Of a stretch of DNA of 64,000 bases, positions 2,598 to 62,209 are shown piece by piece. Source of the stretch: Rebecca billardiae RCC1528 (taxonomy: Eukaryota > Protista > Haptophyta); NCBI GenBank assembly GCA_965240325.2, contig OZ251243.1, positions 744,001 to 808,000 on the forward strand, given 5' to 3'. A program made the translations under genes and the position numbers. The notes under the pieces are model-generated. The model had not been told where the DNA came from and made no database searches. It saw only the letters and a list, made by a program, of their open reading frames with translations. The number at the start of each line of letters is the position of its first letter. The stretch's first letter is position 1.

Positions 2598-3929
2598 TGG
2601 CCCGCGGTGCAGGGCGGAGCGCGCAGCGTGGAGCCCGCAGTGCGGGCCCTAACCACGTTTCAAGAAGATCTTTGATCAAAGAAAAAAGGGCCCGGGGCCG
2701 GGGCGATTTTCAGGGAGGTGGAGACCGAGTTTCGATTTTTTGAGACCGCGCATAGACTCACTGATAGAGAGTAGAGACGTTCATTCGGCGAGAAAAGACC
2801 GCGCCCACGATATTCCCTAAGTAAAGTGCGATCTGGACGTGAGCCGGACGTGACGTTAACGTAATAACGGTTCGTTACGAGCGCGAATCGTATTCGTCGT
2901 CCTGGATCGCGTGACGACTGACGTCCGGACTGGGCCACTCATCCGGATCGGAGGTGACGTGCCCCGCACGATGGCGGATGGGACATTGGGACCAACCCCT
3001 CGGGCTGCGAGCGCGCCTGCACGTGCCTCCGGACCCGCCTCCCGCTTGCTGCTCATGCAGTCAGCTGCGACCGTGGCGCATGATCGCAGAAGCAGTGCCG
3101 GCAGTACGGCCTGCATCAGCTAGTGCCGCGCCGTCGTGGCGCGCGCGGTACGGTTGCGTTTGCAATTGCAGCGCTCGCGCTCGGCGACGGCACGCGCGTG
3201 CGGCTCAGGTGTGTCAAATGCGGTCTCGTCGGCGCGCTTTCGCCTGCCACCTCGTGCACCCGTGCCGCCAGCTTCATCGTCTTCATGAGGACTGCTGCTG
3301 CTGTCGCCATCCGCTCTCCATCACCCCGAGTCGCGCGGCGCGCGCGGTCGCTAGCAGGGCGTACGGTCACTCACCCGTGCAACGGGTCAAGTGGCCAGAG
3401 TACGTCTGGTCGTTGGCTGGCACGGGCCGCAGCGCTAAAGCACCCTGCTGTCACACCCGACTCCTTCAGTACTCCGAGCTCCGCGCGGCACGACTCACTT
3501 GGCACGATCGCGGACGGCCGGTCGGACTTCCGAGCTGATCAGCCAGAGTTGGACAGTTTGGCAGCTAGTAATAGTTGTCAGACGGCGTCCGATGCCGATG
3601 GCACGATCGCGGACGGGTCGGATCCGAGCTGATCAGCCAGTTGGTGTTGGACATTTGGCAGCTAGTTGTCAGACGGACGTCCGATTTGACCGGTGCCGGG
3701 TGCGGTCTCAGGTCCGCTGAGATCTGGTCCGCTGCTGTGATTGTGTGAAGTGTGAATGGGTCTCGCGGTCGCAGGCAGGGCGACGGTCGGACTAATAGCT
3801 TCAGTCATCTCAGAACCGACTTCAACTGGCGAACTGCCACTACGGCGGAGAGCCGCGATTGCACGGCCACCGCGGGCCCCCAACTGCGTTGATTCTTTCT
3901 ATGCAGAAAAGGACCGCGGAACGCGGTCA
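2598..3929 (+). mobile_element. Non-autonomous Helitron2/Helentron-like element, complete copy A
   Basis: Starts A|TGGCCCGCGGTGCA. Subterminal inverted copy CACCGCGGGCC at 3868-3878. Terminal hairpin GACCGCG-GAA-CGCGGTC at 3912-3928, then A|T. No TSD. Body shared with 29420-30441 and 8464-8750. Confidence 0.8.
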
Positions 3930-6289: not shown

Positions 6290-6956
6290 CTACATTGTTC
6301 GTCACATTGTCAAGTCGTATAGTATATTCCACATTCGTAGTCCGACATTACTTACGCGTACTTTATATAGCTCGCGAGCGCCATATGTCATAGTGATATA
6401 TGTATGATGTTTGCTTTCGCCGCGACGAGAGCCTTTCACTTTTAGCGCTGCTATTAGTGCTAAGTCCGAAGTCGCAGCCGCGCGTGCGCTGCGCCGTGCC
6501 GTTGCGCCGGGCTCGCCCGGGGAAGAAGGCGCCGCTGCAGCGCTCCTTCTGCCATCACGCGATCTGCCGGCTGAGAAAGACCTGACTTGCGCCCAATTTT
6601 GACCAAACTGATAACGGGCTCCCTCTATTCAAATAAGCGGGCGCTCGGCCGCGGCGGCATCCGCCGTCGCCGCCGCGTGCCCCACGCCCACGGGCCGAGG
6701 CGGTGCTCTGACATCCCAGCCCCGCTCCCGTAGGCGTAGGGGGGCGGGGCTGCGGGCGGCGCACTGCCTGACCTGGTCGGAACAGGCGCAGACGCATTCT
6801 ATAATATGTGTCTGCTGCACTCTGAGTCTGAGCCTGACGCTTGCCCGTTGCATACCAGTTACCACGTCGTAGATAAAGTATAAGCGGGTAGATTTATTGA
6901 CAATTGACGAATACGGCCCGCGCCAGTGGCTTATCCGGCATGCACTTTTGCTCATA

Positions 6957-7142
6957 CAATTTACTAAGAATAAGAGACGCACACAGCTCAGGCGGGCGAG
7001 ATCGACGCCCGCCAACTGTCACCGCCCATGAAGCCGTCGCCGTGGCTGCGCCGCGACTGGTCTCTCTTCGGAGAGCGTGCGATGAAGGATGGCGCGGCAA
7101 CCTGCCACCGTGAGCCTTACGCACGTTAAAACAAATAAACTG
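6957..7142 (+). mobile_element. Degenerate Tc1/mariner-like MITE (TA|CAGTTTACTA family)
   Basis: Left end TA|CAATTTACTAAGAATAAGAGACGCACACAGCTC matches copies at 12810, 17450 and 36807, and at 51560 (reverse). Degenerate right end GCACGTTAAAACAAATAAACTG. Confidence 0.6.
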
Positions 7143-8463: not shown

Positions 8464-8750
8464 TGACCGCGTTCCGCGGTCCTTTTCTACTGCATAGAAT
8501 CAACGCCGATTTCGGGGCGGGCCCGCGGCCGCGGCCTGGCCGTGCAATCGCGGCTCTCCGCCGTAGTGGCAGTTCGCCAGTTGAAGTCGGTTCTGAGATG
8601 ACTGAAGCTATTAGTCGACGACCGTCGCCCTCGGCCCTGCCTAGTGCCTGCGACCGCGAGACTCATTCAGACTTCACACAATCACGACTGCAGCAGCGTC
8701 GGACCTGAGACCGCACCCGGCACCGGTCACTGCTTGATTGGTCGTAACGA
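8464..8750 (-). mobile_element. 3' fragment of an A-type Helitron2-like element
   Basis: Plus strand A|TGACCGCGTTCCGCGGTCC. Matches 3660-3929 in reverse. Confidence 0.75.
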
Positions 8751-10920: not shown

Positions 10921-13113
10921 TGGCCCGCGGTGCAGGGCGGAGCGCGCAGCGTGGAGCCCGCACCAGCGGGCCGGAACCACGTTTCAAAAAGATCTTTGAT
11001 CAAGAAAAAGGGACGCGGGGGCCGATTTTTAGGGCTGGCGGAGACCGAGTTTCGAATTTTGAGACCCTCTCTACAGATGCATCACGGAGAAAAAAACCGC
11101 GTCCACGACATTCCCCTAATCAATCGTGGACGGCCGGGCGTGAGAGTTCACTTCTGTGTGAAGTAGGACGGTTACAAGTCCAATACAAGCGTCAGCTTCT
11201 TTGCTGAGGCTATTTTTGCACGTCCTTACGGGATCAGCGAAGTAACCAACCGATATATATTGGCTTCGTCGGGGTCGTATTCACTACTGGAGAACATTTG
11301 CACCGCGCTTCGTATTCATATGTATGGTTCACGCAGGCATAAAATCGCTTCGTCGGGGTCGCCGTCGTATCCACTACTGGAGAACATCATTTGCACCGCT
11401 TCGTTTTCATACATTATAATATATATATGGTTCATGGACTGCTATACGGGGTCGAGCAGAATATCATCGATATTCATCAGGCGCACGTGTGCGTATTCAT
11501 CATCAGCCTTCGGGAATTGGGAGTAGCTATTGGCCTTTGCCCTCTGGCGAGCCAGTTGTGCGCACTTTAAGAGCAGGCCTGAGTCTCAGGCTCGAGGCCA
11601 CTTTTTTGCCGCTCACGTGGACATGATGCCGAGCACGTCTCACGAGGTGCGCGCGGCGAGTGGCGTCTGGAGCGCGCGGCTGTGGTGGGCCCCGACGGCC
11701 GTCGACATCGCGTTCGTGCCCCGCTCACTCTGAACTCCGCGCGCCCCCGCCGCCCTATCGATCGATCATCGATGCCTGCGCGCGGAATCGTGCACCGCGC
11801 GTGCCGCCCGCGACCGGCCGCGGCAGGCCCGAGCCGCCCTTTCGGGCTCTCGCAAGCACGGGGGCAGCGGCGCCTGATGGCGGACTGATCGACATCTGAG
11901 TCTCCGACTTCACCACGCGCCCCCCTCGTCATGCCTTCCCGGGGTCTCCCACGGAAGACGGACTAACCGAGCAGGCGACGGTACTGTCTGTACGCTGCCG
12001 TGACACACGGCGCCTGGGCAGCGGGCAGTGGTGGCGGGGTCCCGCGGACGTCAGTCTTCCCCTCGCGCCCTGCTCACCTCGAGTGCGCCGCCACGCGCCT
12101 CCGCACGCGTGTCCCATCGATGCGCAGAGCGGCATGCTTGCATGAAAGTTGAAATGGCTGGGTCATCAGCCCGCGCCGGCAAGTCTGTCTAGCGCTGGAC
12201 GGACGGACATAGGAGGACGAGCAGCGCGGGCGACGGTGGTGCGCGACGCTCCCAGAGCTGGCCGTGCCTCTGCGACGCGTGCCGAGCCTGACCGAGGTGT
12301 GTCACCCGGTCCACGCGCGGCGCGCGCGAAGGCACCGGTGCTGTGGCTGCTCGGCTCGAATCCGCGGCCTCGCCTCGCACCGCGGCACCGTGCTCCCTGG
12401 CTGTCAGCTCCGCGTGGCCTGGCGTGCACGTAGAGTTGCGCTCATGCGTCGATCACGCCTCGCGCCCGCCTGTCGGCCGTCGCGCAGGCGCTGGTCGAAC
12501 CCTACTCGGACCAGTGCAAATCATCTATCCCGTGGCCGCTGCCGGCGCGCGGTGACGGGACAGCGCGGTCAGCAGCAGGCGCAGCGGCCCGAACGAATCC
12601 GCGGCCCCGCACCGTGCTCCCTGGCTGTCTGCTCCGCGTGGCCTGGCGTGCACGTGGAGTCGCGCTCATGCGTCGATCACGCCTCGTCGCATCCGCCTGT
12701 ACACAATATCGGCGCCGCGGCGGCGGCTGCGACTGGGCCCGCCCGGCCCCGGGCGCCCCGGCGGCCCGGCGCGGCCGAGGCGGCGGCGCGCCGCTGGAGT
12801 CTACTGCTACAGTTTACTAAGGATAAGAGACGCACACAGCTCAGGCAGGCGAGATTGACGCCCGCCAGCTGTCACCGCCCATGAAGCCGTCGCCGATGGT
12901 AGCGCCGCCGGAAAAAAAATCGTTACATCAGTAGTTGTACGGGCATGCCAACCGTGCCATTACTGGTCTCACTCTCAGCCTCAGGTCTGTCCGAATCGGA
13001 CAATACAGTAGTGAAATTGAATAGAGTTAGACGACTGCGCGACGGAGGGTGCACCGCCACCGCGGGCCCCGAACTACGTTCGTTCTACGGAAAAGGACCG
13101 CGGAACGCGGTCA
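10921..13113 (+). mobile_element. Helitron2-like element, complete copy B (different cargo; nested MITE end at 12810-12925)
   Basis: A|TGGCCCGCGGTGCA at 10921, subterminal CACCGCGGGCC at ~13058, GACCGCGGAACGCGGTCA|T at 13113. Lies next to an (AT)n tract. 3' part shared with copy C (27578-27785 reverse). Confidence 0.8.
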
Positions 13114-17108: not shown

Positions 17109-17449
17109 AATATAAGCAGGTTCCGAGAGACGTTACTTCCGTGTTCACTCGTCACCTGTCGTACCGTAGCAGACTTTTGCGCTGCAACGGTGTGGCTATA
17201 GCTTCAGTACGGAAGTATCAATACTAGAGTAACCGAGTCACAGTAGTCGCTTGCAGCAGTAGCTACCGCGCGCACCGATCGACACATTAACATTAACAAT
17301 TAAACATGCTGAACGAACTTCTCAGGCTAGTCGCGCTTCGACGGTCGTCGCTCGCGAGTTGTGATGTCGACGAAAAAAAACAAACTGGGGTCGGGGACAG
17401 ATCGAGATCGATTCCCGGCTTGTCGGACCAAGGGGCTTACAAATACGTA

Positions 17450-17542
17450 CAGTTTACTAAGAATAAGAGACGCACACAGCTCGGGCAGGCGAGATTGACG
17501 CCCGCCAACTGTCACCGCCCATGAAGCCGTCGCCGATGGTAG
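17450..17542 (+). mobile_element. TA|CAGTTTACTA MITE left end, continuing at 19267-19295 after a nested insertion
   Basis: Matches 12810-12925 when 17543-19273 is removed. Confidence 0.75.
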
Positions 17543-19266: not shown

Positions 19267-19648
19267 ATGGTAGCGCCGCCGGAAAAAATTCGTTCAGCCG
19301 TCCGCCTGCGAGGCCTGGACGAGGGCTGCGGCCGCCTCGCGGCGCGCCAGCGCCCGTCGTCCTCGCCCCACCGTCGTCCACAAAACGTCGTCGTCCGAAC
19401 TCGCCGACTGGGCGCCGATGCGACAGCGCGCCGACAGGATGAGGATGTAGTAGGGAATGTAGAGCCCATCATTTTGTAAGCCCCTTGGTCGGACCGCGAC
19501 GACGCTGCTGACCACTGTGCATCCGGACCCAAAAGGGCCGTCTCATCAAGCACTGCCATGCGACGGTTGATGCGAACTGAATTGTTTTCCCTATATGATC
19601 GTGTTGCTCACGAGGGTCGAGGGGATCCACCGGCGCTGTGCCAGCGCG

Positions 19649-21415
19649 ATGCTGCCAGGTCTCAAGACCGGCGTGTGCGCGCTCGTGCTCGCCAGCGCGG
19701 CATGGGCGGTGTCGCCGCCGCACATGTCCACGTCCGAGCGCGCGTCCTACCGCGAGCTCGCCTCGTCCATGTTCTCCGACGCATTCAGCGCGTACATGAC
19801 GCATGCTTTCCCGCACGACGAGCTGCGGCCGCTGAGCGGCACGTGGACCGATAGTCTCATCGAGCTGGGCAACGTGCCGCACCCGAAGCGCGATGGGTAC
19901 ACGGGCGTCGCGATGACGCTCATCGACGGCATGGACACGCTCGCCATCCTCGGCAACCGCACCGCATTTGCTGACGCGGTCACGTGGGTGGGCGCGCACG
20001 TGAGCTTCGATCAGGATGCTGTCGTCAGCGTCTTCGAGACGACGATCCGGCTGCTCGGCGGGCTGCTCTCGGCGCACCTGCTCGCGACAGGCGACCTCCC
20101 GGGCTTCGCGCACATGCGCGTCCCGGGCTACGTGGGCGAGCTCCTCCGCCTCGCGCGCGACCTCGCCGACCGGCTCATGCCGGCATTTGAGAGCGCGCCG
20201 CCGTCCGGTCTGCCGTACGCGTTCGTGCACCTGCAGCAGGGCGTGGTCGCGCAGCCGGTGGAGGAGCAGTGCACGGCGGGGATGGGCACGAACCTCCTCG
20301 AGCTCGCGATGCTGACCAACCTCACCGGCGACGCGCGCTACGCGCGCGCGTCCGTGCGTGCGCTCCGATCGCTCTGGGCTCGGCGCTCGGCGCAGGGGCT
20401 CCTGGGCAACACGATCAACATCCACACGGGCGCGTGGCTTAACTCGTTCGCGGGGATCGGCGCGGGCGTGGACTCGTTCTTCGAGTACCTCGCGAAGGGC
20501 GCCCTCTTCCTCTCCTCCTCCGAGCTGCGCGTCATGTGGGAGCGCGCATACGGCGCAGTCCTGCAGCACCTCAAGTCGGGCCCGCACTACCTGAACGCAG
20601 ACATGCACAACCCGGCGCGCAGGCGCGTGCCCTCGTTCGGCTCGCTGCAGGCGTTCTGGCCCGCGGTGCAGGTGCTCGTGGGCGACGTGGCGCAGGCGGA
20701 CGAGACGCACGACGAGTACATGCGCGTGTGGGACGCTTACGGGGCGATGCCCGAGACGTACGCCGTGCGGAACGGCGCGGTGCTCGCGGGCTCCGTCCCG
20801 TACCCGCTCCGGCCGGAGATGGCGGAGTCGACGCTCGCGCTGTACCGCGCGACGCGCGAGCACAAGCACCTGCACTTCGGCGCGCGTATGCTCGACTCGC
20901 TCAACCGCGTCGCGCGCGCGCCGCACGGCTTCGCCGGGCTCTCCTCCGTCGCGACGGGCGAGCAGGAGGACCACATGGCCTCGTACTTTCTCGCCGAGAC
21001 CCTCAAGTACCTCTACTTGCTCTTCGACGAGGAGAATGCGCTCCACGCGGGCATGGACGCGCGCGCCGTCGTGCTCAACACGGAGGCGCACCCGCTGCCG
21101 GTGCTCGGCGAGGACGGGCTGCCGCACGAGGTGTGGCAGGGCCTCGCGGACGATCGGCGCGAGGCGGAGGCCGCGCAGTTCTGCGCAGCGCTGCCGGAGG
21201 CGCTGCTCGACAGCGACGAGCGATATGACGAGGCCGAGGCCGACGCGGGCGCGGTGGCGGGCATGTGCGGCGGCAGCGGCGGCAGCGCACCTGACGCTGC
21301 GCCAGTGGCGACGGCGGGAGCGGCGGGAGCGGCGGCGGCGGCGGCGGCTGCGGCGGCTGCGGGGGTGGCGGCCGGGAGTGCCACCACGACTGCTACCGGC
21401 ACTCATCAGCAGTGA
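19649..21415 (+). CDS. ER degradation-enhancing alpha-mannosidase-like protein (GH47, EDEM-type)
   Basis: Signal peptide; AYMTHAFPHDELRPLS, TLIDGMDTL, VSVFETTIRLLGGLLSAH, GIGAGVDSFFEYLAK, YPLRPEMAES, MASYFLAETLKYLYLLF, NTEAHPL. Confidence 0.95.
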   Translation: MLPGLKTGVCALVLASAAWAVSPPHMSTSERASYRELASSMFSDAFSAYMTHAFPHDELRPLSGTWTDSLIELGNVPHPKRDGYTGVAMTLIDGMDTLAILGNRTAFADAVTWVGAHVSFDQDAVVSVFETTIRLLGGLLSAHLLATGDLPGFAHMRVPGYVGELLRLARDLADRLMPAFESAPPSGLPYAFVHLQQGVVAQPVEEQCTAGMGTNLLELAMLTNLTGDARYARASVRALRSLWARRSAQGLLGNTINIHTGAWLNSFAGIGAGVDSFFEYLAKGALFLSSSELRVMWERAYGAVLQHLKSGPHYLNADMHNPARRRVPSFGSLQAFWPAVQVLVGDVAQADETHDEYMRVWDAYGAMPETYAVRNGAVLAGSVPYPLRPEMAESTLALYRATREHKHLHFGARMLDSLNRVARAPHGFAGLSSVATGEQEDHMASYFLAETLKYLYLLFDEENALHAGMDARAVVLNTEAHPLPVLGEDGLPHEVWQGLADDRREAEAAQFCAALPEALLDSDERYDEAEADAGAVAGMCGGSGGSAPDAAPVATAGAAGAAAAAAAAAAAGVAAGSATTTATGTHQQ

Positions 21416-24398: not shown

Positions 24399-25480
24399 GT
24401 GCTGGGTACAAGGAGCAGCAGCCGCTGCAGCGCGCGCCGGCGAGGTACCGCCGCCTCGCGAGCCACGTGCACAAGTCGCACACCGGCATGCGGCAGGACC
24501 ACCGTCTCTTCCGCAGCCCCTCGTCCGGGAGCGGGAACGAGGGCTCGGGCCCTTTCTCCGCCGCCTGCCCACCCGCCGGCGCGGCCGGGCCCACGAAGCC
24601 CGCGGCGGCGGGGCTGGGCGGCATGCCCATGCCCGAGGGGCGCAGCCCGCCCAAGGCCAAGGTGGGCTGGCTCGAGAAGGCGGGCGGCAAGGCCGGAATC
24701 CTCCGGATGCAGCGCTTTGCGCGGCGCTACTTTGAGCTGCGCGAGGGCATGCTCATCTGGTACGCATCGAACGAAGACATGACGCTCAACCTGCCCTGCC
24801 CATCGTGCTCGGCGGGGCCACTCAGTCTCACCGACTTCGAGGAGCCGCGCATGCGCGAGGACGGCTTCACCATCTGCCTGACCCCGCGGCCGCGCGCCAC
24901 GCACGGCGGCGCGTCGAGCGGGATCGTCGAGCCAATCCTGCTGCGGCCGGTGCGCAGCGGAGACCTGCGCGCGGCCAACACGTGGCTGCAGATGCTGCGC
25001 GCGCACCACGAGTTCTACACCGAGAGCGCTCGCGTCACGTTCGCCTCGCCAATGCAGCGGGTTGCGCACAGGCTGGCTTGCACCCCAGGCCTAATGAGGC
25101 CGACCGACGGCCTTCCCGGCCGCAGGCACACGCTGCAGGTCCAGTACTCGAGCGAGCCGCACAAGCCCAGGACACCCGCCCACGCGCGCTGGGACATTGT
25201 ACGGGTGGCGTTCGGGCTCGCCAGGAGCACGACGCATCCAAGCCCCGAGCACATCGCCATCGAGGCGCGCGGGAGGCAGCTCAAGCGCGCGGCCTCCGAG
25301 GCGTCCCTCGTCTCCTCGGCTGATGCTACCTCCTTCAGGGGCGCCACACAAATGGCTCAGGGTCGGAATGCGGCATTGACGTTTCGAGACTGCGCTGCCA
25401 ACGATGCTGCGCCAGTGGCACCGGGCACGGCCGGGCATCTGAATCGGCTCAGCGGCGGCTGGGCTGCCACTCTCCACTGA
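24399..25480 (+). CDS. PH-domain protein (frame open back to the gap; first ATG at 24488)
   Basis: KVGWLEKAGGK...RFARRYFELREGMLIWY...NTWLQML matches the PH-domain beta1/beta2 strands and C-terminal helix Trp. Confidence 0.7.
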
Positions 25481-25641
25481 CACAATGACACACATGCACA
25501 TTGTCAACTGACGCGCACAGTGCCGCCCGAGACCTTACTTAGTCCGCGGGAGTGAACCTCTAAGTCAAAGTGATGAGCATTGCCGCTCGCACCTCGGAAC
25601 CTGAGGCGCGGAGCAGACCATCCGATGTAATACTAATAATA

Positions 25642-27577
25642 TGACCGCGTTCCGCGGTCCTTCCGTAGAACCAACGTAGTTAGGGGCCCGCGGTGCACCC
25701 TCCGTCGGCTGCTGTCTCAGTCTGGTCATTGGTCAACATGGCGGGCCGATGAGGACTGTCGCCGCGGGCCCGCGCGAAGAAGTACGGACGGCGGCCGGGG
25801 CAGCGGCGCGCGCGCGCAGGGCGAGCCTGGGCCTTGAGGTGCTCGCGCTGCGCCACGCGCTCGACGACGGGCCGCTGGTCGCTCAGCCGGCGCGCCTCGT
25901 GCCGGCAGAGCGAGAGCGCGCACCACTCTGCTGGCCCCACCCCCAGCGGCCCCAGCCTGAGCTCACGGCGCTGCGCAGCCGCGCACCGAGAGGCGAGACC
26001 GACTACCGAGCGGAGCTCGGGGTGGAACGAGGCGAGCGGCGGGTCGCGCCTGCCGGCCGCGCGTGCGCGCCTGCTCCACCGCGCCACCGTGCTCGCCCGC
26101 CGCCTCCTCCGCCGCGTCGGCCTCGAAGCCACGGCGGCGGCCAGCCAGCCTCCGACCGAGGCGGAGCCCGTGCGTGCTCACTCACCCGGCGCGGTGGCGC
26201 CCTCGAGTCGACGGCCGTCTACTCCACAGCTGGCTGCTCGAGCTGCTGCACGGGGCGTCGCGACGAGGGCGCCGCGCGCGCCCAGCGCGTCCGTCGCCGC
26301 GTCGCGCAGCGCGTCGAGCTCGGCGCCGCGCTTCGCCAGCTCGGCGCCCAGCGCCTCCGTGCGCACTCGTGCTCATTCGATTGTCGTCATCGCGCTCGTC
26401 GGCTCCGTGGCGAGCCCGCGGGGCGGACGAGCGGACTACTGCGCGCCGCAGCAGGAGCAGCGCGCGGCGCGCAGCGCTCCGCGCGCAGCAGGGCCGTCTC
26501 CTCATCCACCGAGTGCACGGCCTGCGCGGCGGCGACGGCGGCGCGCGCCCGGCCGCGGGGGGACGCAAGCGCTGCGGGCCGAGATGAGTCCGGCCGCCGA
26601 GCCGCGGTGGCGGCGTCGGCGTGCGCGCCGGGCGAGGTGGGCGAGCTCACGCGGCCCGGGCTCAGCACGCCCGTGCACAGCGCCGGCCGCGGTGGCGAGC
26701 GCGCACCGCTCGGCCGCGGTGGCAACCGGCTGAGCGGTTGATGTTTCGGATTGTTTGAAGCCGCGAGGTCAGCGACGTCTCCGATGACTCGGCCATGATT
26801 GTGGTCCTCCTTCGCCCACGGGTGCTTTGTCGACCATCCGCTGGAGGCGCGCCAACGTCGGTACGGACAGCGCCTGCTTGAGCGTCGTGATGTGCATCAG
26901 CTCGAGCCGGCCGAAGATGGGCCCGCCGACGGCGATGATCATGATGTGCGCGCTTGCCGCTTGGGCACCCGTCCTCGTCGCGAGACGCTGGCGGGCGGGT
27001 AACCCGTTTTTCTTTCATATTATGGCAAAGGAGGTTCATCCATCGAGGCAGGCGGGTAACTTGGTTTATTCAGCGCTATTCAAAACAATCCCTTCATTAT
27101 GACACTAGGAGGTTCATCCATCGAGGCAGACGGGTAACTTGGTTGGACAGGCGCTATTGAAAAGAATCTCTTTTAATATGACGAGGCGGTTCATCCATCG
27201 AGGCAGGCGGGTAACGTATTTGAACAAGCACTATTCAAAAGAATCTGGCCTCATAGCTGTTTTCGACCCAAAACAATCAAACGTCGCTCGGCAAACTCGT
27301 ACTTCAGCATACAAGAGGGGTAGGAATACTCACTTGTTTCACCCCCGGGGTATCTGATCCCACGTCCGTCCATAGTAGATACAAGAATTGCAGCGGGCGC
27401 GGCCTTTTAAGCTGTGATGGACAGCATACCCCCCTCAAAAAGTCGAAAACTCACCCTCCAACAGCCCTCAAAATCGTCCCCCGTCCCCTTTTCTTTGATC
27501 AAAAGATCTTTTTGACAACGTAGTGAGGGCCCCCGGCGGGGCTCCACGCTACGCGCTCCGCCCTGCACCGCGGGCCA
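25642..27577 (-). mobile_element. Helitron2-like element, complete copy D (third unit of the head-to-tail array), cargo includes ~77-bp tandem repeats and a frameshifted gene-like fragment
   Basis: 5' TGGCCCGCGGTGCA at 27577. 13-bp perfect subterminal inverted repeat at 25685-25697. Terminal hairpin ends at 25642, followed by T. Confidence 0.8.
27030..27245. repeat. Three degenerate ~77-bp tandem units (GGTTCATCCATCGAGGCAG(G/A)CGGGTAAC core)
   Basis: Core seen at ~27033, ~27111 and ~27188. Confidence 0.85.
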
Positions 27578-29419
27578 TGACCGCGTTCCGCGGTCCTTTT
27601 CCGTAGAACGAACGTAGTTCGGGGCCCGCGGTGGCGGTGCACCCTCCGTCGCACCCTCCGTCGCGATCGAGAGTGGGCCCGCCCGGCCGCGAGCCCGGCA
27701 GCGAGTAGACTCCAGCGGCGCGCCGCCGCCCGCCGCGCGGCCGGGCGGGCCCATCGCAGCCGCCGGCGAGGCGCCGATTGTGTACAGTCGAAGTCATGGC
27801 CGACTGAGATCGTCGGCACGCGCTGCTGCTGCGAGATCGTCGGCGTCGGCACGCGCTGCTGCTGCGAGGGCTGCTCGCTCTCCAACTGACCGAGGCACTC
27901 GAGCAAGCCAAGGTATGCGCACGCCTCGTCGCAGCCAGCCAGGGCCTCCACAGTGATTTTGTACAGCACCTCGCACGCGTCCTGCTGCTGCTGCCCAAAC
28001 GCCGTTGTCCACCGACAGACCTCCGCGATCGCGTCGTGGAGCGGCTTGAGCAAGCTACGCGTCGGCCCCACCTCGCTGGGCCACTCGCAGTTGACATGCG
28101 CGAGCGCCAGCGAGCGCGCCATGCTGGACACGATGGGGTAGTGGTGCACTGCTCCGCCGCGGCAGATGTGGCGAGCGAGACGATGGAAGGGCACGCGAGC
28201 AGCGCGGCCAGCAGCGAGCCGAGGTAGCACGTGACGCCTAGGTTGAGCGTGCCCAGCAGGCTGAGCGAGCCGGCCGGGCGCCCCCGCTGCGGTTGTGCTT
28301 GCTCTGCAGCGGGCATTCCCCGCCGAGCGCGGCGAGTGCCTCGAAGCGGCTGCCAGCTGTTGGGCCGGATGAGGAGGAGGGAGGGAGCTGGCCTGCGGGG
28401 CGCGTGGTGAAGTCGGTGATCAACCGCGCAGCGCCACCGCTGCCGAGTGCGCCCTCCGCCGCCAGCACCTTGCGGACCTGGCCAAGGAGCTGCTTGATCG
28501 CTTTTGTTGACACGCCGTACTCGCTCGCGGCGCCGGGGATGGTCTGCTTGTGCCTGGCGACGGAGATGGCGGCAGCGGTGCTCTGGAACGTGGTGTTGTT
28601 CACCCGCGTCACCGTCCTCGAGTCGAGCAGCGCGTTCAATACGCGGCGAACGTAGTCCTGGTCGGCGTCGCCGGTCGAGGTGCTGCTTGCCATCGCCCCC
28701 CACGTGCGATCGGGCCCACCTCTGTTGTTTTGCGTCGGTGACGGGGCCGCGACGACTCGACGCGAGCATCTTCAATAATCTATGATCATCGTCAGGGTTA
28801 CTACGTGAAGCGGTAGAATAGAATTTCATTTACGAGCATTGATACGACGCGGCGCAACGTGAAGCGGTTTTTTTTAAGATTCGACGCGGTCTAATGACCC
28901 ATTGTTCATACATGTACATGAATGGGTCGTCATAAACGGCGGGCGGCTCATTTATGACCAGACCGGGCCCTGGGTGATTGATGATCAGAACCCGCAAAAG
29001 CTAGCGGCAGTCCAGCACACAAGTAATGAATTAATAACAAGCGCAGTCCAGCACACAAGTAATGAACTAATGGCCCGCGGTGCCGGCTGGCTATCTAGAT
29101 ACGTCGTCATCGCTCCTTGATGACCTTACGGCAATCTCATTGGCTGGAAAAAATCGCTTGTAACGGTTCGTTACGTTATGGATCCTAAAGGGCGTGAAGT
29201 TTTTTGGACGGGCGTCACTCCAATATGAACTTGTCGTGGGCGCGACCTTTGTCGCCGGATGGATACCTCTAGTGCGGTCTCAAAATTCGAAACTCGGTCT
29301 CCTCCAGCCCTGAAAATCGTCCCCCGTCCCTTTTTTCTTGATCAAAGATCTTTTTGAAACGTGGTTAGGGCCCACGGAGCGGGCTCCACGCTGCGCGCTC
29401 CGCCCTGCACCGCGGGCCA
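27578..29419 (-). mobile_element. Helitron2-like element, complete copy C (middle unit of the array)
   Basis: Both ends form exact GGTCA|TGGCCC junctions with neighbours (29420/29419 and 27578/27577). Confidence 0.8.
27790..28693 (-). pseudogene. Frameshifted, truncated ubiquitin-specific protease (peptidase C19) fragment carried inside element C
   Basis: Cys box LGTLNLGVTCYLGSLLAAL (~28260-28200) and QQQDACEVL box (~27995-27960) lie in different frames. No His box seen. Confidence 0.65.
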
Positions 29420-30441
29420 TGACCGCGTTCCGCGGTCCTTTTCTGCATAGAATCAACGCAGTTGGGGGCCCGCGGTGGCCGTGCAATCGCGGCTCTCCGC
29501 CGTAGTGGCAGTTCGCCAGTTGAAGTCGGTTCTGAGATGACTGAAGCTATTAGTCCGACCGTCGCCCTGCCTGCGCGACCGCGAGACTCATTCACACTTC
29601 ACACAATCACAGCAGCGGACCTGAGACCGCACCCGGCACCGGTCGTCAAATCGGACGTCCGTCTGACAACTAGCTGCCAAATGTCCAACTGGCTGATCAG
29701 CTCGGATCCGACCCGTCCGCGATCGTGCCATCGGCATCGGAATTACTACTAGTAGCTGCCAAACTGTGTCCAACTCTGGCTGATCAGCTCGGATCCGACC
29801 CGTCCGCGATCGTGCCGAGTGAGTCGTGCCGCGGAGCTCGGAGTACTGAAGGAGTCGGGTGTGACAGCAGGGTGCTTTAGCGCTGCGGCCCGTGCCAGCC
29901 AACGACCAGACGTACTCTGGCCACTTGACCCGTTGCACGGGTGAGTGACCGTACGCCCCGGCTGCCTAGTGCCTACCGCGCGCGCCGCGCGACCGGCGAC
30001 TCGGGGTGATGGAGAGCGGATGGCGACAGCAGCAGCAGTGCTCATGAAGACGATGAAACTGGCGGCACGGGTGCACGAGGTGGCAGGCGAAAGCGCGCCG
30101 ACGAGACCGCATTTGACACACCTGAGCCGCACGCGCGTGCCGTCGCCGAGCGGCGAGCGCTGCAAACGCGTGAACCGTACCGCGCGCGCCACGACGGCGC
30201 GGCACTAGCTGATGCAGGCCGTACTGCCGGCACTGCTTCTGCGATCATGCGCCACGGTCGCAGCTGACTGCGTGAGCAGCAAGCGGGAGGCGGGTCCGGA
30301 GGCACGTGCAGGCGCCGTCCCGCATATCCGCCATCGCCCATCGTGCCGGGGCACGTCACCTCCGACGATCCGGATGTGGCCCAGTCCGGACGTCACGCGA
30401 TCCGGGAAGACGAGTACGATTCGCTCGTAACGAACCGTTAC
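29420..30441 (-). mobile_element. Helitron2-like A-type copy, 5'-truncated at the internal GTAACG-GTT-CGTTAC palindrome
   Basis: Reverse complement of ~2865-3929 with small indels. Confidence 0.85.
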
Positions 30442-31315
30442 ACTAACTAGAGAGTGAGTTGCAGCCGCCGCTGCACGCCGGCGGCAGCTTCACGACCACC
30501 TTCAGACGTTCGCTTGGTTCGTATACCGGTAGCGGTGCGGACAGCGCTGCAGCCTGCGTTGACAACTGCGCAGGGCACGCATCAAGCGCGCGCCCCTACT
30601 GTCTACTGAGCCTCGGACGTGTAAGGCTGGTGGACGGCCGTAAATCGAAACAGCTGCAGGCGAGGCCCGGGGCGCAGATCCAGTCGAGCAACACTGATGT
30701 GCGCGCCGCCGCCGAGAGTTGCAGCAGCAGGGGCAGGCAGCCAGGTGCCAGCCGCGCAGGGCACGGCACGCATCAAAACAGTTGCAGGCGAGGCCCGGTG
30801 CGCAGATCCAGTCGAGCAACGCCGCCGCAACACGGACCGGCGCGCCACTCCGTCCGGAGAGATGTAAAGAGTTGCAACCGCCGGGGGCAGGTGACAACCG
30901 CGCAGGACACGCGTCAAGCGTGCGTGCGCCTCCTGAGCACCGGGCATGAGAGCGGCCGTCATCAGTTGCAGGCGACGCCCGTTGTGCGGATCACTCGATC
31001 ACTCGTCGAGCCGTCGGATCAATCGTCGGGCGTTACAGATCGGTCATCGGCCGCACGGTCGCGAGGTGCAGGCGAGGTGCAGGTGGAGGGCGGCCGTCGA
31101 CAGTTGCAGGCGACAGGGCGTGAGCATCCTGCTCACACATCACCCCGACGGTCCACACCCTCGGTCACAGCCCCGCGGCGCCCGCGGTGGCATCTCGACC
31201 TCCCGTCACTCCGTCAGGGCGGTCAGCCTGGCCCGAGCGGGCCCCCCCCTGACGAGCGAGTATCATCGCTGTTGATTATCAAATAGTGAGCCGCCTAACT
31301 TGAGTCGCGTCGACT

Positions 31316-31345
31316 GTGTGTGCACGTTAAAATCATAGTAAACTG
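31316..31345 (+). mobile_element. TA|CAGTTTACTA MITE right end
   Basis: GTGTGCACGTTAAAATCATAGTAAACTG|TA, as at 36743-36769. Confidence 0.6.
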
Positions 31346-31529
31346 TAATCGATCGACGGACCCTGATTGGCCCTCCATGTTTCGTCGAGAAGAATTTTCC
31401 TTCGGACGAACGGCAACTCGAGCGGAAAACATGTACACATCGCGCAGCCATCACTCGACAAAAGCGTACTCCGAATCTTTTCTTTCGAGGCCACTATGTG
31501 CGAGGACTGTCCCAACTGCAGACATGGTG

Positions 31530-31655
31530 GGTAGAACTCGTCGAAACGATTGTTTGGCGAGTAAAACCCGGCGAACCGATGGTCTTTCGGAGCAACATTC
31601 GTCGAACCGTTGGTCTGACGAGTAAAAACAGCCGAACCGATGGTTTTTTATAGAG
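31530..31655. repeat. Four degenerate ~30-bp tandem units (CGAA(A/C)CG(A/T)T(G/T)GT core), probably TE subterminal repeats
   Basis: Core recurs at ~30-bp spacing. Confidence 0.55.
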
Positions 31656-31742
31656 AAAACTCCGAATTGTGGGCATTTTCGTAACTAACCCGACATCTGT
31701 GCCGCGGATCCACTTTACACGATTAAGTAGAGTAGACTGTAC

Positions 31743-36727: not shown

Positions 36728-36840
36728 TCACGCCTTAACCAAGTGTGCACGTTAAATCATAGTAAACTGTACAGTACGGTAGTAGTCAGTCAGTAGAGTA
36801 CAGATACAGTTTACTAAGAATGAGAGTCGCACCCCGCTCA
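36728..36840. mobile_element. Back-to-back MITE ends (right end to 36769, left end from 36807) separated by a TAC/TAG/CAG-rich tract
   Basis: TAGTAAACTG|TA ... TA|CAGTTTACTAAGAAT. Confidence 0.65.
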
Positions 36841-36929
36841 GTCAAAAGTGTAACAAGTGTGACATGTCACATGACCCTTCCGCTTCCGCGGCTGTGCGCA
36901 GCCGCGCCGTCGGGGTGCCGAGCCGCCCG

Positions 36930-38750: not shown

Positions 38751-38965
38751 TGGCCCGCGGTGCAGCGGGCGGAGCGCGCAGCGTGGAGCCCGCACTGCGG
38801 GCCCGAACCACGTTTCAAAAAGATCTTTGATCAAGAAAACAGGGACGGGGGCGATTCATTAGGGCTGGCGGAGACCCAGTTTCGAGTTTTTGAAATTCAT
38901 TTGAGATCGCATAGAGAGGTCTATTAGGCCGAAAAAGAGCGCGCCCACGATATCCCCTAAGTAAA
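38751..38965 (+). mobile_element. Helitron2-like element 5' end (copy E; 3' end not found)
   Basis: A|TGGCCCGCGGTGCAGCGGGCGGAGCGCGCAGCGTGG... matches 2598-2825. Inserted 33 bp after the ASM-like stop. Confidence 0.75.
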
Positions 38966-51514: not shown

Positions 51515-51603
51515 ATCTCGCCTGCCTGAGCTGTGTGCGTCTCTTATTCTTAGTAAACTGTGCCTGCCGGAGCTGTGTGCGTCTCTTATTCTTACTCAAC
51601 TGT
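51515..51603 (-). mobile_element. Two tandem fragments of the TA|CAGTTTACTA MITE left end
   Basis: GAGCTGTGTGCGTCTCTTATTCTTA repeated twice; reverse complement of the 12810 end. Confidence 0.65.
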
Positions 51604-51908
51604 AGACGCGCCGGCGTAGTGCGCCATGCGATACCGGACGTACGTACGTACACCGTATTCGCAGCTACGTCCAGCCGATTGTCAATCAGCCCGATCAAAG
51701 GAAAACCCGTAGGCCCGATTGTATGTCATGATGGTTTTTCCGCGGCCGCCGCCATCGCGCATTATTTCTCGGCGCCGTCGCGTCGTCGTCACGTTTTCTG
51801 GGGAAATGCTCCGGCCGGTCGTGAAACTCGGAGGCATCGTCGTGTCCACGGGCTTCTCCGCGACCCCGTGCATCGAGCCGTCGCGACGCGTGTGGCGGCG
51901 CGTCGAGC

Positions 51909-53178: not shown

Positions 53179-53181
<3 letters not shown>

Positions 53182-54956
53182 GATCGGCTACGCCGATCTT
53201 CGGGTATAGTAAACAACGAAGTTGAGGGCGCACGGCCCTGGTATCTAGTTGTCGCGCGCGTTCTTCACGACTGCTGAATCACGTTGCGCGCGCGCCCCGG
53301 CCCGGCGCGTCGCCGTACACGAGGGCGACTGCGAGCACGGGTTAGACTGAGAGGGGAGCACGGCGTCGCCCGTAGCATATGCCACCTCGCCATCGTCGCA
53401 GACTCGCCGCTCGCAGATCTAAGCCTGTGGCTCGTCTCGTCGGTCAGGCAGTCAGGCATCCGTCGAGTGATGACTGCGTCAGACGACTGCGCGTTGCAGC
53501 CGCAGCCATACCGTACATACATACGCTCGATCAGCGGGACTACGCGCGAGTTGTTCATCTGCCTTCTAACGGTGCCGGCACGTGGCGCGACGATTCTGGC
53601 GTCATTATCACTTGACGACTCGACTGATCACGACGAGTGCCGTCATCGTCTGGCTATCGCGTATAGAACGACCGGCCGTGACGCGCTCTGCACCACGTAC
53701 ATTCGGACGCGGCAATGAGCAGCATGCACCACCGTCCGGCCGTCTCAGGTCGCTGTCGTCGGCAGCCAGCCGGTGCCGGGCACGGTGGCGCCGGGCGCTC
53801 GCAGCTGAAGGACCGCGATCAAGGATTGATTGCCAAGTCGTCAGCCGACGACTGGGAAGTTGAGCCTGATGCTGCCCGCTGCCGGTTCGCGGGACGAATG
53901 ACGAGCAGCCTATGGTCCGTGAACCTGCGTCAGCTCCTAGAACTCTTCCAGACGTGGTGAGGATATCCCTCACTGCGAACTCAGCCCTCTCGCGCTGACG
54001 CAGCGCGTAGACCTTGCGGCCTGCTGCGTGCCGCGAGCTATCGGACAGCGCGGCCCGCCGGCCGCGGGCCTTGGGCGGCGGGTCGACGGCTCCAGGCAGC
54101 TGCGGAGGACGCGGAGGCCGGTCGCATCCCGGCCAATGCGTGGGCATCGGCCCGGCGGTTGGGCCCGTCAGCACGTCGGCAAGCGCTCTGATGCCACTCG
54201 ACTCTCGAGACTGGCTGCCGAGCCGTGTCGCGCAACCGTGCCCGGCAAGACACGTGGGTCCGCGCCGAGCGTTCACCGGCCTCCGAACCCGCGCACGCCT
54301 ACCAGCCCAGGGCCAGGGCACGCGCCGTCGAGCTGCCCAGTCGCAAGCAGCTCGACAGCCCCGCTGTGTGCGCGCGCCCTGCCGGTCCGTCCGCTGCCCG
54401 CTCGAGGGCGAGCACGCGGCGCCTCACCTGTCGACCACGACAGCGCGCCTCGCGTGCACACTCTGACGGCGAGGCCCGGGATCTGGGCATGCGATGGCAC
54501 TACCCGCGCCTCCGCCAAGTCTCGGCCTGGCCGAGGGGTGCAACACCGGCCGAGCCCTCGGCCCGGCGCGCCGCCGCCAGCCTGAATGCGCTGAAAAGCC
54601 CCGAAGCCGTGCGCGGCAGGCCTGCGCGTGCGAGCGGCGATGGGCGTGGGCGGCGTTGCGCGGCGCGAAGTGGGCCAGGGGCATACGTCAGCCTCGACTC
54701 CGCCGCGTCGCGCGCGGCCGAGCGCGCGCTCTGCGCGCGGGGCGCGCGACGCGAGGCGGGCGCTCGCGCACACACACGGCCATCCCATCCGGGAGGCTCC
54801 GCGACGGCTCAAGCCCCGCGCCGCCTCCGCAACCCGACTCACGGCCGCAGGAGCGCCCGGCGCGAGCGGCCCGGCGAAGGTCGGGCCGCCTCCCCTCGTG
54901 AGCAACCCGAGTCTTCGTCAGCCTCTGTGAGCCGAAGCACCCTGAACCCCGTACTA

Positions 54957-54998
54957 CAGTTTACTATGATTTAACGTGCACACTTGGTTAAGGCGTGA
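54957..54998 (-). mobile_element. TA|CAGTTTACTA MITE end (uninterrupted)
   Basis: TA|CAGTTTACTATGATTTAACGTGCACACTTGGTTAAGGCGTGA. Confidence 0.65.
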
Positions 54999-55374
54999 TA
55001 TCTGATGTAGTCATTAGGTGTGTATTGCGTACCCACCTCTTTATGCTTTGCACTTGCATATGTATGTGATTAAGGCGACAATCGTCCAAAAACGGACAGA
55101 GATGAGATAGGCAGAGAGCCCAGAAGTGACGGTTCGTTAGCTCGTACCATTATGAAACTTTACCCCCTTGATAACCGTATGATACTGACCAGGGCGCGCG
55201 GGAACGTCGATTCAAGCTACCCGCGCAATACCATATCGCGTCGCTTTGATGAATCTGAGCAGTGAACAGCTATCCAGAGAATTCGTTCGATATCTCACCT
55301 TTTTATAATCAGTTCAACACACGAATCTTGACTATCAGAAAGGTATCAGAGATGACTTCGTCCTATTTGATTCC

Positions 55375-55602
55375 GATTTCTTCTATTACTTACTATCCGA
55401 GGATTAAGGAGCAGTACAAACGCAATCATGAGCAGCGAAATGGACTCAAATGCTGCCCACGGTTTCACCTAAATCCACCTACAAAAATCCCCCAAATCCT
55501 GCGCGCATCCTCTTTTTTGATTTTGCGGAGCACGTGCGCCGCCCCCCCCCCCCCGGCTTTCGCTCACGCTCAGACCTTTCGGGGGGGGGGGGCCGTGCGC
55601 CA
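55375..55602 (-). mobile_element. Second copy of the 2060-2281 repeat end
   Basis: Near-identical sequence with the same terminal boundary. Confidence 0.6.
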
Positions 55603-55604
55603 TC

Positions 55605-55608
<4 letters not shown>

Positions 55609-56810: not shown

Positions 56811-58963
<2,153 letters not shown>

Positions 58964-60706: not shown

Positions 60707-61681
60707 TCAGACGGCTGAGGGCCCAGGCCCGAGCTCGAAGCTGCGGGGGATGATCGTCTTCGTGAGCATCTCGTACGCCATCCACTGGCGGATGCTCGGG
60801 ATGTCCGCCTGCGAGAAGTCGAGCTTGCGGCCGAAGACCAGGCAGCGCACATACATGCACACGAACACGCCGCAGTCGAAGCCGTTGCCCTGCACGGGCG
60901 CGTCATCGCGCAGCACGCTCGGCCAGTGCGACACGTCGACATGCGCGCCGTACTTGGTGTGCCATTCCTCGGCGAGCCACGGGCGGAGCAGCCGCGCGCA
61001 CGAGGGGTGCCGCGGACGGTACGAGTCGAGGAGCTCGAAGCGCTTCGCCTTCAGGTCGATGGCGGCGAGCACCCAGTGCGCCTGCCCCAGGTTGATCGGC
61101 ACGAGAATGCGCTGGTACCCGCGCAGGTCGACGTCCTTCGTCCAGCGGCGCACGCCGTCGTAGTCGTACGCGGCTGTGTCAGTCGCCCTGGCGAGGCGGG
61201 TGTAGAAGAAGCAGCTCATCACGTGCGCGCGGTGCGCCATCCTCGGCCGCTGCTTGGCATACTCGTCGAGCATGCCCAGGTAGACGTTGATGAGCTCATC
61301 GTTCAGCCACTCGCCCGGTCGCATGCGCGCCATGCACTGCCGGGTGACGTTGTTCCCGCGGAGCGAGACGAGCACCTCGCGGGGACGCTTGAGGCAGATC
61401 GAACGATCGAGCGCGCCGCGTACCGCGCGCGCCTCGTCGCCCCCGACCGACCACGGCGAGCGCTGGGCCCTGGGCCGCTCGAACAGAGGTCTGCGCAGGA
61501 AGCCCCACGCCGATGACCACAGGCGCAGGCGCAGGCGGCCGATTTGGCGCAGGACGCTGAGGGCGTCGATGGCGGAGTTGCGCCGGAGGCCCCGCGCCGG
61601 GCGATGCTCGGCGAACCCGCGACCCGCGGGACGCCACCGAGAGCTGCGGGCCCTACTCGGCCACTGCCACGACGGCGCCAT
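60707..61681 (-). CDS. Ulp1/SENP SUMO protease (peptidase C48)
   Basis: WLNDELINVYL, FFYTRL, GVRRWT, ILVPINLGQAHWVL (His), LLDS (Asp), QGNGFDCGVF (Gln, Cys). Confidence 0.92.
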   Translation of the reverse strand: MAPSWQWPSRARSSRWRPAGRGFAEHRPARGLRRNSAIDALSVLRQIGRLRLRLWSSAWGFLRRPLFERPRAQRSPWSVGGDEARAVRGALDRSICLKRPREVLVSLRGNNVTRQCMARMRPGEWLNDELINVYLGMLDEYAKQRPRMAHRAHVMSCFFYTRLARATDTAAYDYDGVRRWTKDVDLRGYQRILVPINLGQAHWVLAAIDLKAKRFELLDSYRPRHPSCARLLRPWLAEEWHTKYGAHVDVSHWPSVLRDDAPVQGNGFDCGVFVCMYVRCLVFGRKLDFSQADIPSIRQWMAYEMLTKTIIPRSFELGPGPSAV

Positions 61682-62209
61682 CACGACTCAACTGCCTCAG
61701 TCATAGCCTGTCCGGCCCCCCTCCGCTGGCTACACAGCAGTGTAGAGTCGGACAGCCTACCTCAGTCAAGCCCGGCAGGAAGTTTCAAGTTTCAAGTTTC
61801 TCAAGCAGTGGCCCTCACTCCTCAGTGTTCATGGGTGAGCAGCGGCAGCCGGATCCGTTCGGCGTCCGAGTCCGACGCGAGATTCGTCAGATGAGGATAA
61901 GCTACTGTACGCAACCACGGCGCCGCGCGCCGCACGACAACGCCGTGCCGGCGGGGCCGCCCGAGACCGTCGCTGATGATCGTCCGATCACTGATGATGA
62001 CCTCACTGGTCAGGCAGACACTGTCGCGGGCGTGTGGCTCGGTGGCGGCACGGGCCGGCCGCGCCCGGGCCGCATGCGGCACGCCTGGCACGGGTGCCGC
62101 AACGGTTCAAGCGCAGCAGCCGATCAGTGCCATCGAAGGCGCCAGGCAGCCCGATGCGGCCTAGCGGCCGCCCGACCGCGCGCGGCGCGCAGCGCCGGGG
62201 CTCGCGGCC

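Follow-up and report, generated by a model that had tools for sequence, protein, structure and literature searches.

How three unlike transposons come to stand head to tail without a single base between them is the question raised by a locus in the haptophyte Rebecca billardiae RCC1528 (Haptophyta). We analysed a 64,000-nt window of its genome (GCA_965240325.2, contig OZ251243.1, 744,001-808,000 of the forward strand), in which three Helitron2-like elements, designated A', C and D, form an array on the minus strand; coordinates throughout are positions within this window, and the array was read on the minus strand over 25400-30700. The region and each unit were compared with the window by BLAST, and the ends were placed in two alignments (A1 and A2). 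These comparisons confirmed that the observed three-unit head-to-tail array is real, and we consider it roughly an even proposition that it arose by terminus-directed integration at one AT-rich site, the end of a resident element having served as the target for the next.

The first unit, A' (29420..30441, minus strand), is a 5'-truncated copy of a family-1 element, A, that also occurs alone in the window, and retains the 3' end only. It aligns to 2865-3929 of solo A (A positions 268-1332) with 88.4% identity over 1095 columns, and the first 267 bp of A are absent from it and were not found upstream when searched by BLAST against the window, leaving A' without a 5' terminus. Units C (27578..29419, minus strand, 1842 bp) and D (25642..27577, minus strand, 1936 bp) are both complete and non-autonomous, with family 5' ends at 29419 and 27577 and 3' ends at 27578 and 25642, respectively; an AT-rich flank beginning TATTATTAG follows the 3' end of D. 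Both junctions read ...CGCGGAACGCGGTCA|TGGCCCGCGGTGCAGGG..., where the bar marks the joint, with zero bases between units: junction 1 (29414..29424, minus strand) connects the 3' end of A' to the 5' end of C between 29420 and 29419, and junction 2 (27572..27582, minus strand) connects the 3' end of C to the 5' end of D between 27578 and 27577. The original prediction, made from the sequence before this analysis, had given both joints as an exact GGTCA|TGGCCC with no intervening base, and this is what we observed on the minus strand. A', C and D run in one orientation throughout.

Common to the units are a 5' module of ~140-190 bp and a 3' module of 58-76 bp, their interiors being unrelated by BLAST and in A1 and A2. 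Outside these end modules only GC-rich low-complexity matches were found among the units, and the interior of C has no BLAST match elsewhere in the window. The claim that different elements with shared ends and unrelated interiors had been joined is thus borne out by these comparisons, save that A' is not a whole element, and the accompanying argument that simple read-through of one element cannot yield unlike units holds for this locus.

The shared ends are the termini of a real repeat family, since the window contains six copies of the 19-nt 3' end where 0.05 would be expected, and four of the 24-nt 5' end where 0 would be. When JGI metagenome contigs and IMG/VR were scanned with the same 19-nt 3' end, six loci were returned (L001-L006), all of them chance matches, and none of the six carried an upstream inverted repeat or an A|T flank. 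Repeated family ends can be mis-joined during assembly, and an artefact of this kind would be helped by the 43-nt identical core common to all termini; no contig or read across either junction was found among the Logan contigs of four runs, which, mapped to 25300-30800, measured 40-530 nt and were broken at the shared termini. The two junction regions are, however, only 87% identical over 207 bp (13% of positions differ) and so do not represent a single collapsed repeat, the interiors differ from unit to unit, and two perfect zero-base joints would rarely be expected from a mis-join. We also queried 62 nt centred on the C|D joint, in which 30 of the 32 possible 31-mers cross the joint, and of four words sampled one was present in each of two runs, X1 and X3 (organism A's run and a marine sediment metagenome). 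There is thus a weak indication that independent data contain 3'|5' joint words, whether from arrays or from circles, and we regard an assembly artefact as extremely improbable.

The architecture of the ends indicates what kind of element has been stacked. Family-1 termini take the form TGGCCCGCGGTG...CGCGGTCA. Complete copies begin TGGCCCGCGGTGC, and a partner ~35-40 nt downstream pairs with the terminal GGCCCGCGG, giving a 5' terminal inverted repeat and 5' hairpin (29369..29419 in C and 27527-27577 in D, minus strand). Folded as single-stranded DNA, the first 80 nt reach -20.9 kcal/mol in C and -20.5 kcal/mol in D (z of -2.4 and -2.5), and both loop and stem of this hairpin differ among copies with the pairing kept (A2). 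At the opposite end, a perfect 7-bp stem closed by a GAA loop (GACCGCG-GAA-CGCGGTC; 29421..29437 in A', 27579-27595 in C and 25643-25659 in D, minus strand) stands 1 nt before the terminus, followed by A, at all six family-1 3' ends. A subterminal 3' inverted repeat, CACCGCGGGCCCC (29465..29477 in A', 27621-27633 in C and 25683-25695 in D, minus strand), is complementary to the 5' terminus TGGCCCGCGGTG, such that bases 1-13, TGGCCCGCGGTG(C), pair with (G)CACCGCGGGCC located 41-45 nt from the 3' end in the three units and in the solo copies. A 5'-terminal T is present, no target duplication is visible (flanks TTA|...|T(A/T)), and two of the three A-type copies are 5'-truncated.

Helitron2 elements were described by Bao & Jurka (2013) as elements that begin with a 5' T, carry asymmetric terminal inverted repeats and two hairpins, and are frequently 5'-truncated (PMC3627910), with the 5' inverted repeat 0-2 bp from the 5' end inside the 5' hairpin and its 3' copy upstream of the terminal hairpin (PMC3627910). 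The family-1 ends fit this structural definition, matching the Helitron2-like ends noted in the original prediction, and judged by their sequence the elements are best read as rolling-circle transposons of Helitron2 type. Similar features are found in the FoHeli elements of Fusarium, whose hairpins likewise carry GAA loops (PMC5148889); Helitron2 and FoHeli elements also resemble the present family in having non-autonomous derivatives with ~200 bp of 5' end and ~50 bp of 3' end in common, and in leaving no visible target duplication. A canonical Helitron (Helitron1, with 5' TC, 3' CTRR and a single 3' hairpin) was considered and rejected, the ends here being TG...TCA with two hairpins and inverted repeats; canonical Helitrons integrate between an A and a T, and this A|T core is the only feature shared.

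Assignment to another HUH class would leave the logic of the array unchanged. Replitrons, which have a single-tyrosine Rep and no helicase, occur in algae, probably including haptophytes, and combine copy-and-paste movement with a right-end hairpin (PMC10288648), and the 6-mer CGCGGT stands near both termini of our elements. This 6-mer is, however, part of a palindromic CCGCGG motif, and the Replitron hallmark is a pair of short direct terminal repeats, of which the ends here give no convincing sign, carrying instead the asymmetric inverted repeat and two hairpins that are the Helitron2 signature; an inverted-repeat end architecture is not among the features described for Replitrons (PMC10288648). 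We consider membership of such a class very unlikely.

Three solo copies have the 5' flanks ...GTTA|, ...ATTA| and ...ATTA|, four have the 3' flanks |TACC, |TTAT, |TATT and |TATT, and two more 3' flanks, |TATA and |TTGT, were read from another organism's contigs. The preferred target is about TTA|T(A/T), usually in an AT-rich island or (TA)n tract. With ends TGG...TCA, the family differs in this respect from the Helitron2 elements of Chlamydomonas, which use TTTT|T/C, and from FoHeli1/2, which insert after TNAT (the next base is given both as T and as A in PMC5148889). At the joints the sequence is TCA|TGG, which keeps the A|T core and mismatches the solo target at the flanking positions; each ...TCA is followed by the 5' T of the next element, so that A|T is recreated at the terminus, just as had been foreseen. 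Better-matching TTA|T sites exist in the flank of D within 15 bp of the array end. AT-rich half-sites bound the array on both sides, in keeping with the splitting of one original target patch.

A family that prefers AT-rich islands and (TA)n tracts, at a density of at least nine elements in the window, might be supposed to have inserted independently into one favoured AT-rich patch and to have landed on the boundary A|T by coincidence. The window nonetheless offers 81 AT-rich islands, with 4896 AT, 1040 TAT and 175 TTAT sites, TCA|TGG matches the solo target TTA|T(A/T) worse than do sites a few bases away, and the coincidence is needed twice, in the same orientation both times. In a window-scale estimate, two exact end hits among 7 elements have a P of ~0.0002-0.004 under A|T or TA|T site models; under a TTA|T model, which the joints themselves violate, the same two hits have a P of ~0.1. 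A chance origin of the exact joints is unlikely, and we find independent landings in a single patch very improbable.

Given that the joints offer a poorer context than nearby sites and that all units share a single orientation, we favoured terminus-directed integration. HUH transposases, including those of Helitrons, IS91 and IS200/IS605, cut single-stranded DNA at fixed positions beside hairpins and rejoin the ends (PMC5148889, PMC10288648). Since the cleavage contexts of the elements resemble the target T-Y-A|T, the use of a resident terminus as the next target is the simplest account of unlike units joined with zero bases between them. Under such a scheme, a RepHel transposase encoded elsewhere in the genome would mobilise the units in trans, and the array would grow stepwise at one AT-rich site. 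The transposase would bind the terminal hairpin and cut after ...TCA at the 3' end or before TGG... at the 5' end, taking the resident element's own cleavage site as its target. The 3'-OH at ...TCA would then attack the incoming 5' end, and the incoming 3' end would be joined to the old flank. Ligation of the incoming single strand in the same orientation would produce a 3'|5' joint with zero bases between the units, the same as that of a circle junction, and the insertion would leave a new A|T at the array end; shared orientation, exact joints and a restored A|T, all predicted by this scheme, are present at the locus. The anatomy, the common ends, the exact joints, their one orientation and their deviation from the solo target context are observed, whereas we infer the transposase, this chemistry and the order of insertion. 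Because A' has no 5' end, the A'|C joint cannot stem from A' replicating alone.

Several observations weigh against terminus-directed integration by a Helitron2-type enzyme. No open reading frame (ORF) for a Rep, helicase or other transposase was found in the window, so that the elements are non-autonomous and the enzyme a putative one, and no RepHel ORF bearing the family termini, as would be expected of an autonomous partner, lies within the 64 kb. The 3' repeat, at 41-45 nt, is farther from the end than the ~20-30 nt of the original Helitron2 description, although the 38-51 bp reported for FoHeli (PMC5148889) is similar. A paralogous search returned no empty sites for the solo copies or the array flanks, no polymorphic intermediate array was obtained, and to these is added the lack of joint-spanning Logan contigs or reads given above. 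The joint statistics come from one window with 7-9 elements, and chimeric circles or recombination through shared ends would give the same joints.

The last of these points concerns two further explanations. In one, the joints were made in a transposition intermediate, such as a chimeric circle or hetero-concatemer, or a composite A-C-D, moving by its outermost ends, left a 5'-truncated copy at the locus. The joint sequence is that expected of a circle junction, and both composite transposition (PMC4224331) and joined-end circles (PMC5148889) are documented for Helitrons. The composition of C is also in keeping with it: the last 75-76 bp of C are 100% identical to the 3' end of another solo element, B, and the 5' modules of C and B are 87% identical, so that C looks, from its sequence, like a chimera of the 5' module of one lineage and a 3' module identical to that of B, and its interior holds a 3'-repeat-like relic at 29071-29083. 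A truncated first unit followed by full units is, moreover, the rolling-circle pattern of plant centromeres, as cited in PMC5148889. There is, however, no second copy of a joint-containing composite in the window, and trans-joining of two elements is not known for any Helitron. Contig depth was 50-120 over A' (high-copy), ~30 over part of D (multi-copy) and ~4-8 over the interior of C (low-copy), and a spreading A-C-D composite is not evident from these values. Movement of the array as a composite, which the original prediction had raised, is possible; that an intermediate or composite produced the joints we consider unlikely.

In the other explanation, a circle of one element was integrated by homologous recombination through the 5' or 3' module shared with a resident (Campbell-type). 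The units are bordered by such modules, of 140-190 bp and 58-76 bp, circles have been recognised as intermediates (PMC5148889), and an exact head-to-tail joint in a single orientation would be expected here too. These modules, however, are short and only ~86-88% identical between neighbouring units, making a poor recombination substrate, and A' is without any 5' module. Recombination of this type appears distinctly unlikely to us. We also rejected the reading of C-D as a split-direct-repeat element (DIRS/PAT-like). In that layout, A1-...-B1A2-...-B2, the repeat pairs are identical at insertion and no monomer form occurs, whereas the C and D repeat pairs are ~86.5% identical and monomers exist at 2598-3929 and 10921-13113.

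The exact joints between unlike units suggest that the enzyme accepts a resident terminus as target, a reading that the poorer context of the joints strengthens. If true, terminus-directed integration would go some way towards accounting for the clustering of Helitrons and for their multi-terminus copies and chimeric families. A broader version, in which resident ends are the preferred integration sites in a haptophyte Helitron2 lineage and zero-base arrays are formed routinely and then mobilised from their outermost ends, we offer as a tentative and rather doubtful extension. Were it correct, such end-stitching would be the main route to new chimeric families with shared ends and unrelated interiors, and arrays of this kind would provide a natural and testable read-out of Helitron2 transposase target choice.

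Within the array, D carries tandem repeats at 27019..27249 (minus strand), comprising three units of ~77 bp with 82-84% identity. In C, the family 5' terminus recurs as an exact reverse complement in a 13-mer at 29071..29083 (plus strand); over 12 nt this 13-mer matches a D-type 3' inverted repeat, AT-rich DNA follows it, and its plus-strand flank reads ...CTAA. It is possibly a bypassed older 3' inverted-repeat relic or the 5' tip of an opposite-strand insertion. Upstream of the array, at 31520-31660 (minus strand), tandem units of ~55 bp contain AACGGTTCG-like motifs that recall the TAACGGTTCGTTAC palindrome at the truncation point of A'.

Family 1 has seven copies in the window (A, B, A', C, D, a 3' fragment and a lone 5' end), and elements of the Helitron2-like kind number at least nine. 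Elements A (2598..3929, plus strand, 1332 bp, flanked by ...GTTA| and |TACC) and B (10921..13113, plus strand, 2193 bp, within a (TA)n tract) are complete and solo. The A-type 3' fragment (8464..8729, minus strand) is the second 5'-truncated copy, with the 3' 265 bp left, and the solo 5' end (38751..38965, plus strand) is without a recognisable 3' end. A second family is represented by an element of ~2.4 kb (53181..55602, minus strand) with the 5' end TGGCGCACGGCCC, the 3' repeat GGGCCGTGCGCCC, the hairpin GATCGGC-GTA-GCCGATC and a terminus ...TCA|T beside a (TA)n tract. Its ends have the same layout as those of family 1, with covarying, mutually complementary repeat and stem sequences, and this covariation between families indicates that the architecture is maintained and not the sequence itself. 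A second family-2 5' end was noted at 2281 (minus strand), inside a duplicated block (2042-2286 and 55356-55607).

Another head-to-tail pair, of an unrelated family that starts CGTGGGGTTATTGG and ends GGCTAGA, occupies 56811-58554 (plus strand). Its two units share a 300-bp 5' module and a 194-bp 3' module that are 100% identical between them, their interiors measure 528 and 236 bp, and they abut directly at ~57829/57830, where a few bases belong to both repeat blocks; a (TA)n tract adjoins. From its sequence this pair resembles a split-direct-repeat (DIRS/PAT-like) element more than it does a stack of transposons. In run X2 (organism B), at a loose end at 25641, the first 17 nt of a 56811-type element directly adjoin a family-1 3' end at a GTTA|T site, a contact indicating that the elements insert into other transposons at their usual target. 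A further dispersed repeat, with copies starting TACAGTTTACTAAG... or TACAGTTTACTATG... at 6949-7054, 12802-12902, 17442-17542, 36799-36844 and 51515-51605 and related ends at 31326-31345, 36751-36768 and 54958-54975, is probably the end of a further transposon family; one copy lies inside B and another just upstream of the array.

The array neighbours, encoding a GH47 mannosidase, ABCE1 and a DnaJ-PDZ protein, are largely intron-free genes. For the GH47 protein, an exact-sequence look-up returned no record, and Diacronema lutheri supplies the closest homologue (66% identity), which suggests a host of the Pavlovales type. Within the GH47 ORF (19595-21415), a conserved host coding sequence, 16 nt at 20657-20672 (plus strand) match the family 5' terminus exactly (TGGCCCGCGGTGCAGG); this is probably a coincidence in GC-rich coding DNA, though unexpectedly long. 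A stand-alone Ulp1/C48 protease ORF at 60707-61684 (minus strand; Pfam E 7e-35) was considered as part of a RepHel and rejected, as a cNMP-binding protein kinase gene (62465-63955) lies directly upstream and no Rep or helicase is attached.

The original prediction had likened the array to an integron-like stack of cargo cassettes, and this comparison did not survive closer analysis. Neither a recombinase or transposase gene nor an attI-like platform is present at the array, the first unit is a truncated relic, and what would be the 'cargo' is either non-coding or decayed. Across 25600-31400 and its surroundings, the ORFs gave neither a recombinase nor any other significant Pfam hit; C has only a sub-threshold Pfam match, to the Cys box of ubiquitin hydrolases (E 0.006; 16.7 bits, the cut-off being 23.9). 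The 151-aa ORF of C has no real homologue among 1.84 billion proteins, its single hit being a low-complexity repeat protein. With the Pfam match below threshold and this ORF an orphan, the cargo of C is not demonstrable as a gene.

The novelty originally claimed for the locus was likewise overstated, as adjacent unrelated Helitrons, tandems and composite transposition have already been published (PMC4067079, PMC5148889, PMC4224331); the kind of structure is known, and the array is no new kind of genetic system. What the locus adds is a clean Helitron2-type case in a Pavlovales-type haptophyte, in which evidence from the site context speaks for end-directed insertion. Little is understood of how Helitron2/Helentron elements choose their targets and terminate, and no biochemical study of a Helitron2 transposase was found in the literature consulted on them. 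For haptophyte Helitrons, our literature searches yielded only a Tisochrysis annotation pipeline and possible Replitrons.

In bat and maize, distantly related Helitrons directly adjoin one another, and tandem arrays have been attributed to terminator bypass (PMC4067079). Chellapan et al. reported tandem insertions in Myotis, Drosophila, rice and maize together with joined-end PCR products, and three tandem Helitron2-like copies in Metarhizium have been explained by insertion into the 5' end or by rolling-circle replication (PMC5148889). Compared with these adjacent and tandem Helitrons of bat, maize, silkworm and Metarhizium (PMC4067079, PMC5148889), the present locus comprises three unlike Helitron2-type units, one of them truncated, with two zero-base joints, and in contrast to the tandems explained by bypass, its site context argues for end-directed insertion. 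The end-bypass models of composite or chimeric Helitrons (Feschotte & Wessler; Tempel), as described in PMC4224331, likewise produce shared ends with unrelated interiors, and our array could similarly be mobilised from its outermost ends. In that description host DNA lies between the ends used, whereas the units of our array adjoin without any intervening DNA, and no transposed composite was found.

Likenesses extend to the prokaryotic IS91/ISCR and IS200/IS605 elements, which share hairpin-adjacent single-strand cleavage, orientation-specific insertion at a short target and one-ended transposition, and in which one logic governs recognition of both the target and the cleavage site of the element itself; they differ in employing a Y2 Rep without a fused helicase or Y1 dimers, and in their targets. 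Integron arrays resemble the locus in bringing unlike units together in one orientation at one site that each addition recreates. Here, however, there is no integrase, attI/attC, promoter or intact cassette ORF, and the units are transposons, each of a kind with two ends of its own.

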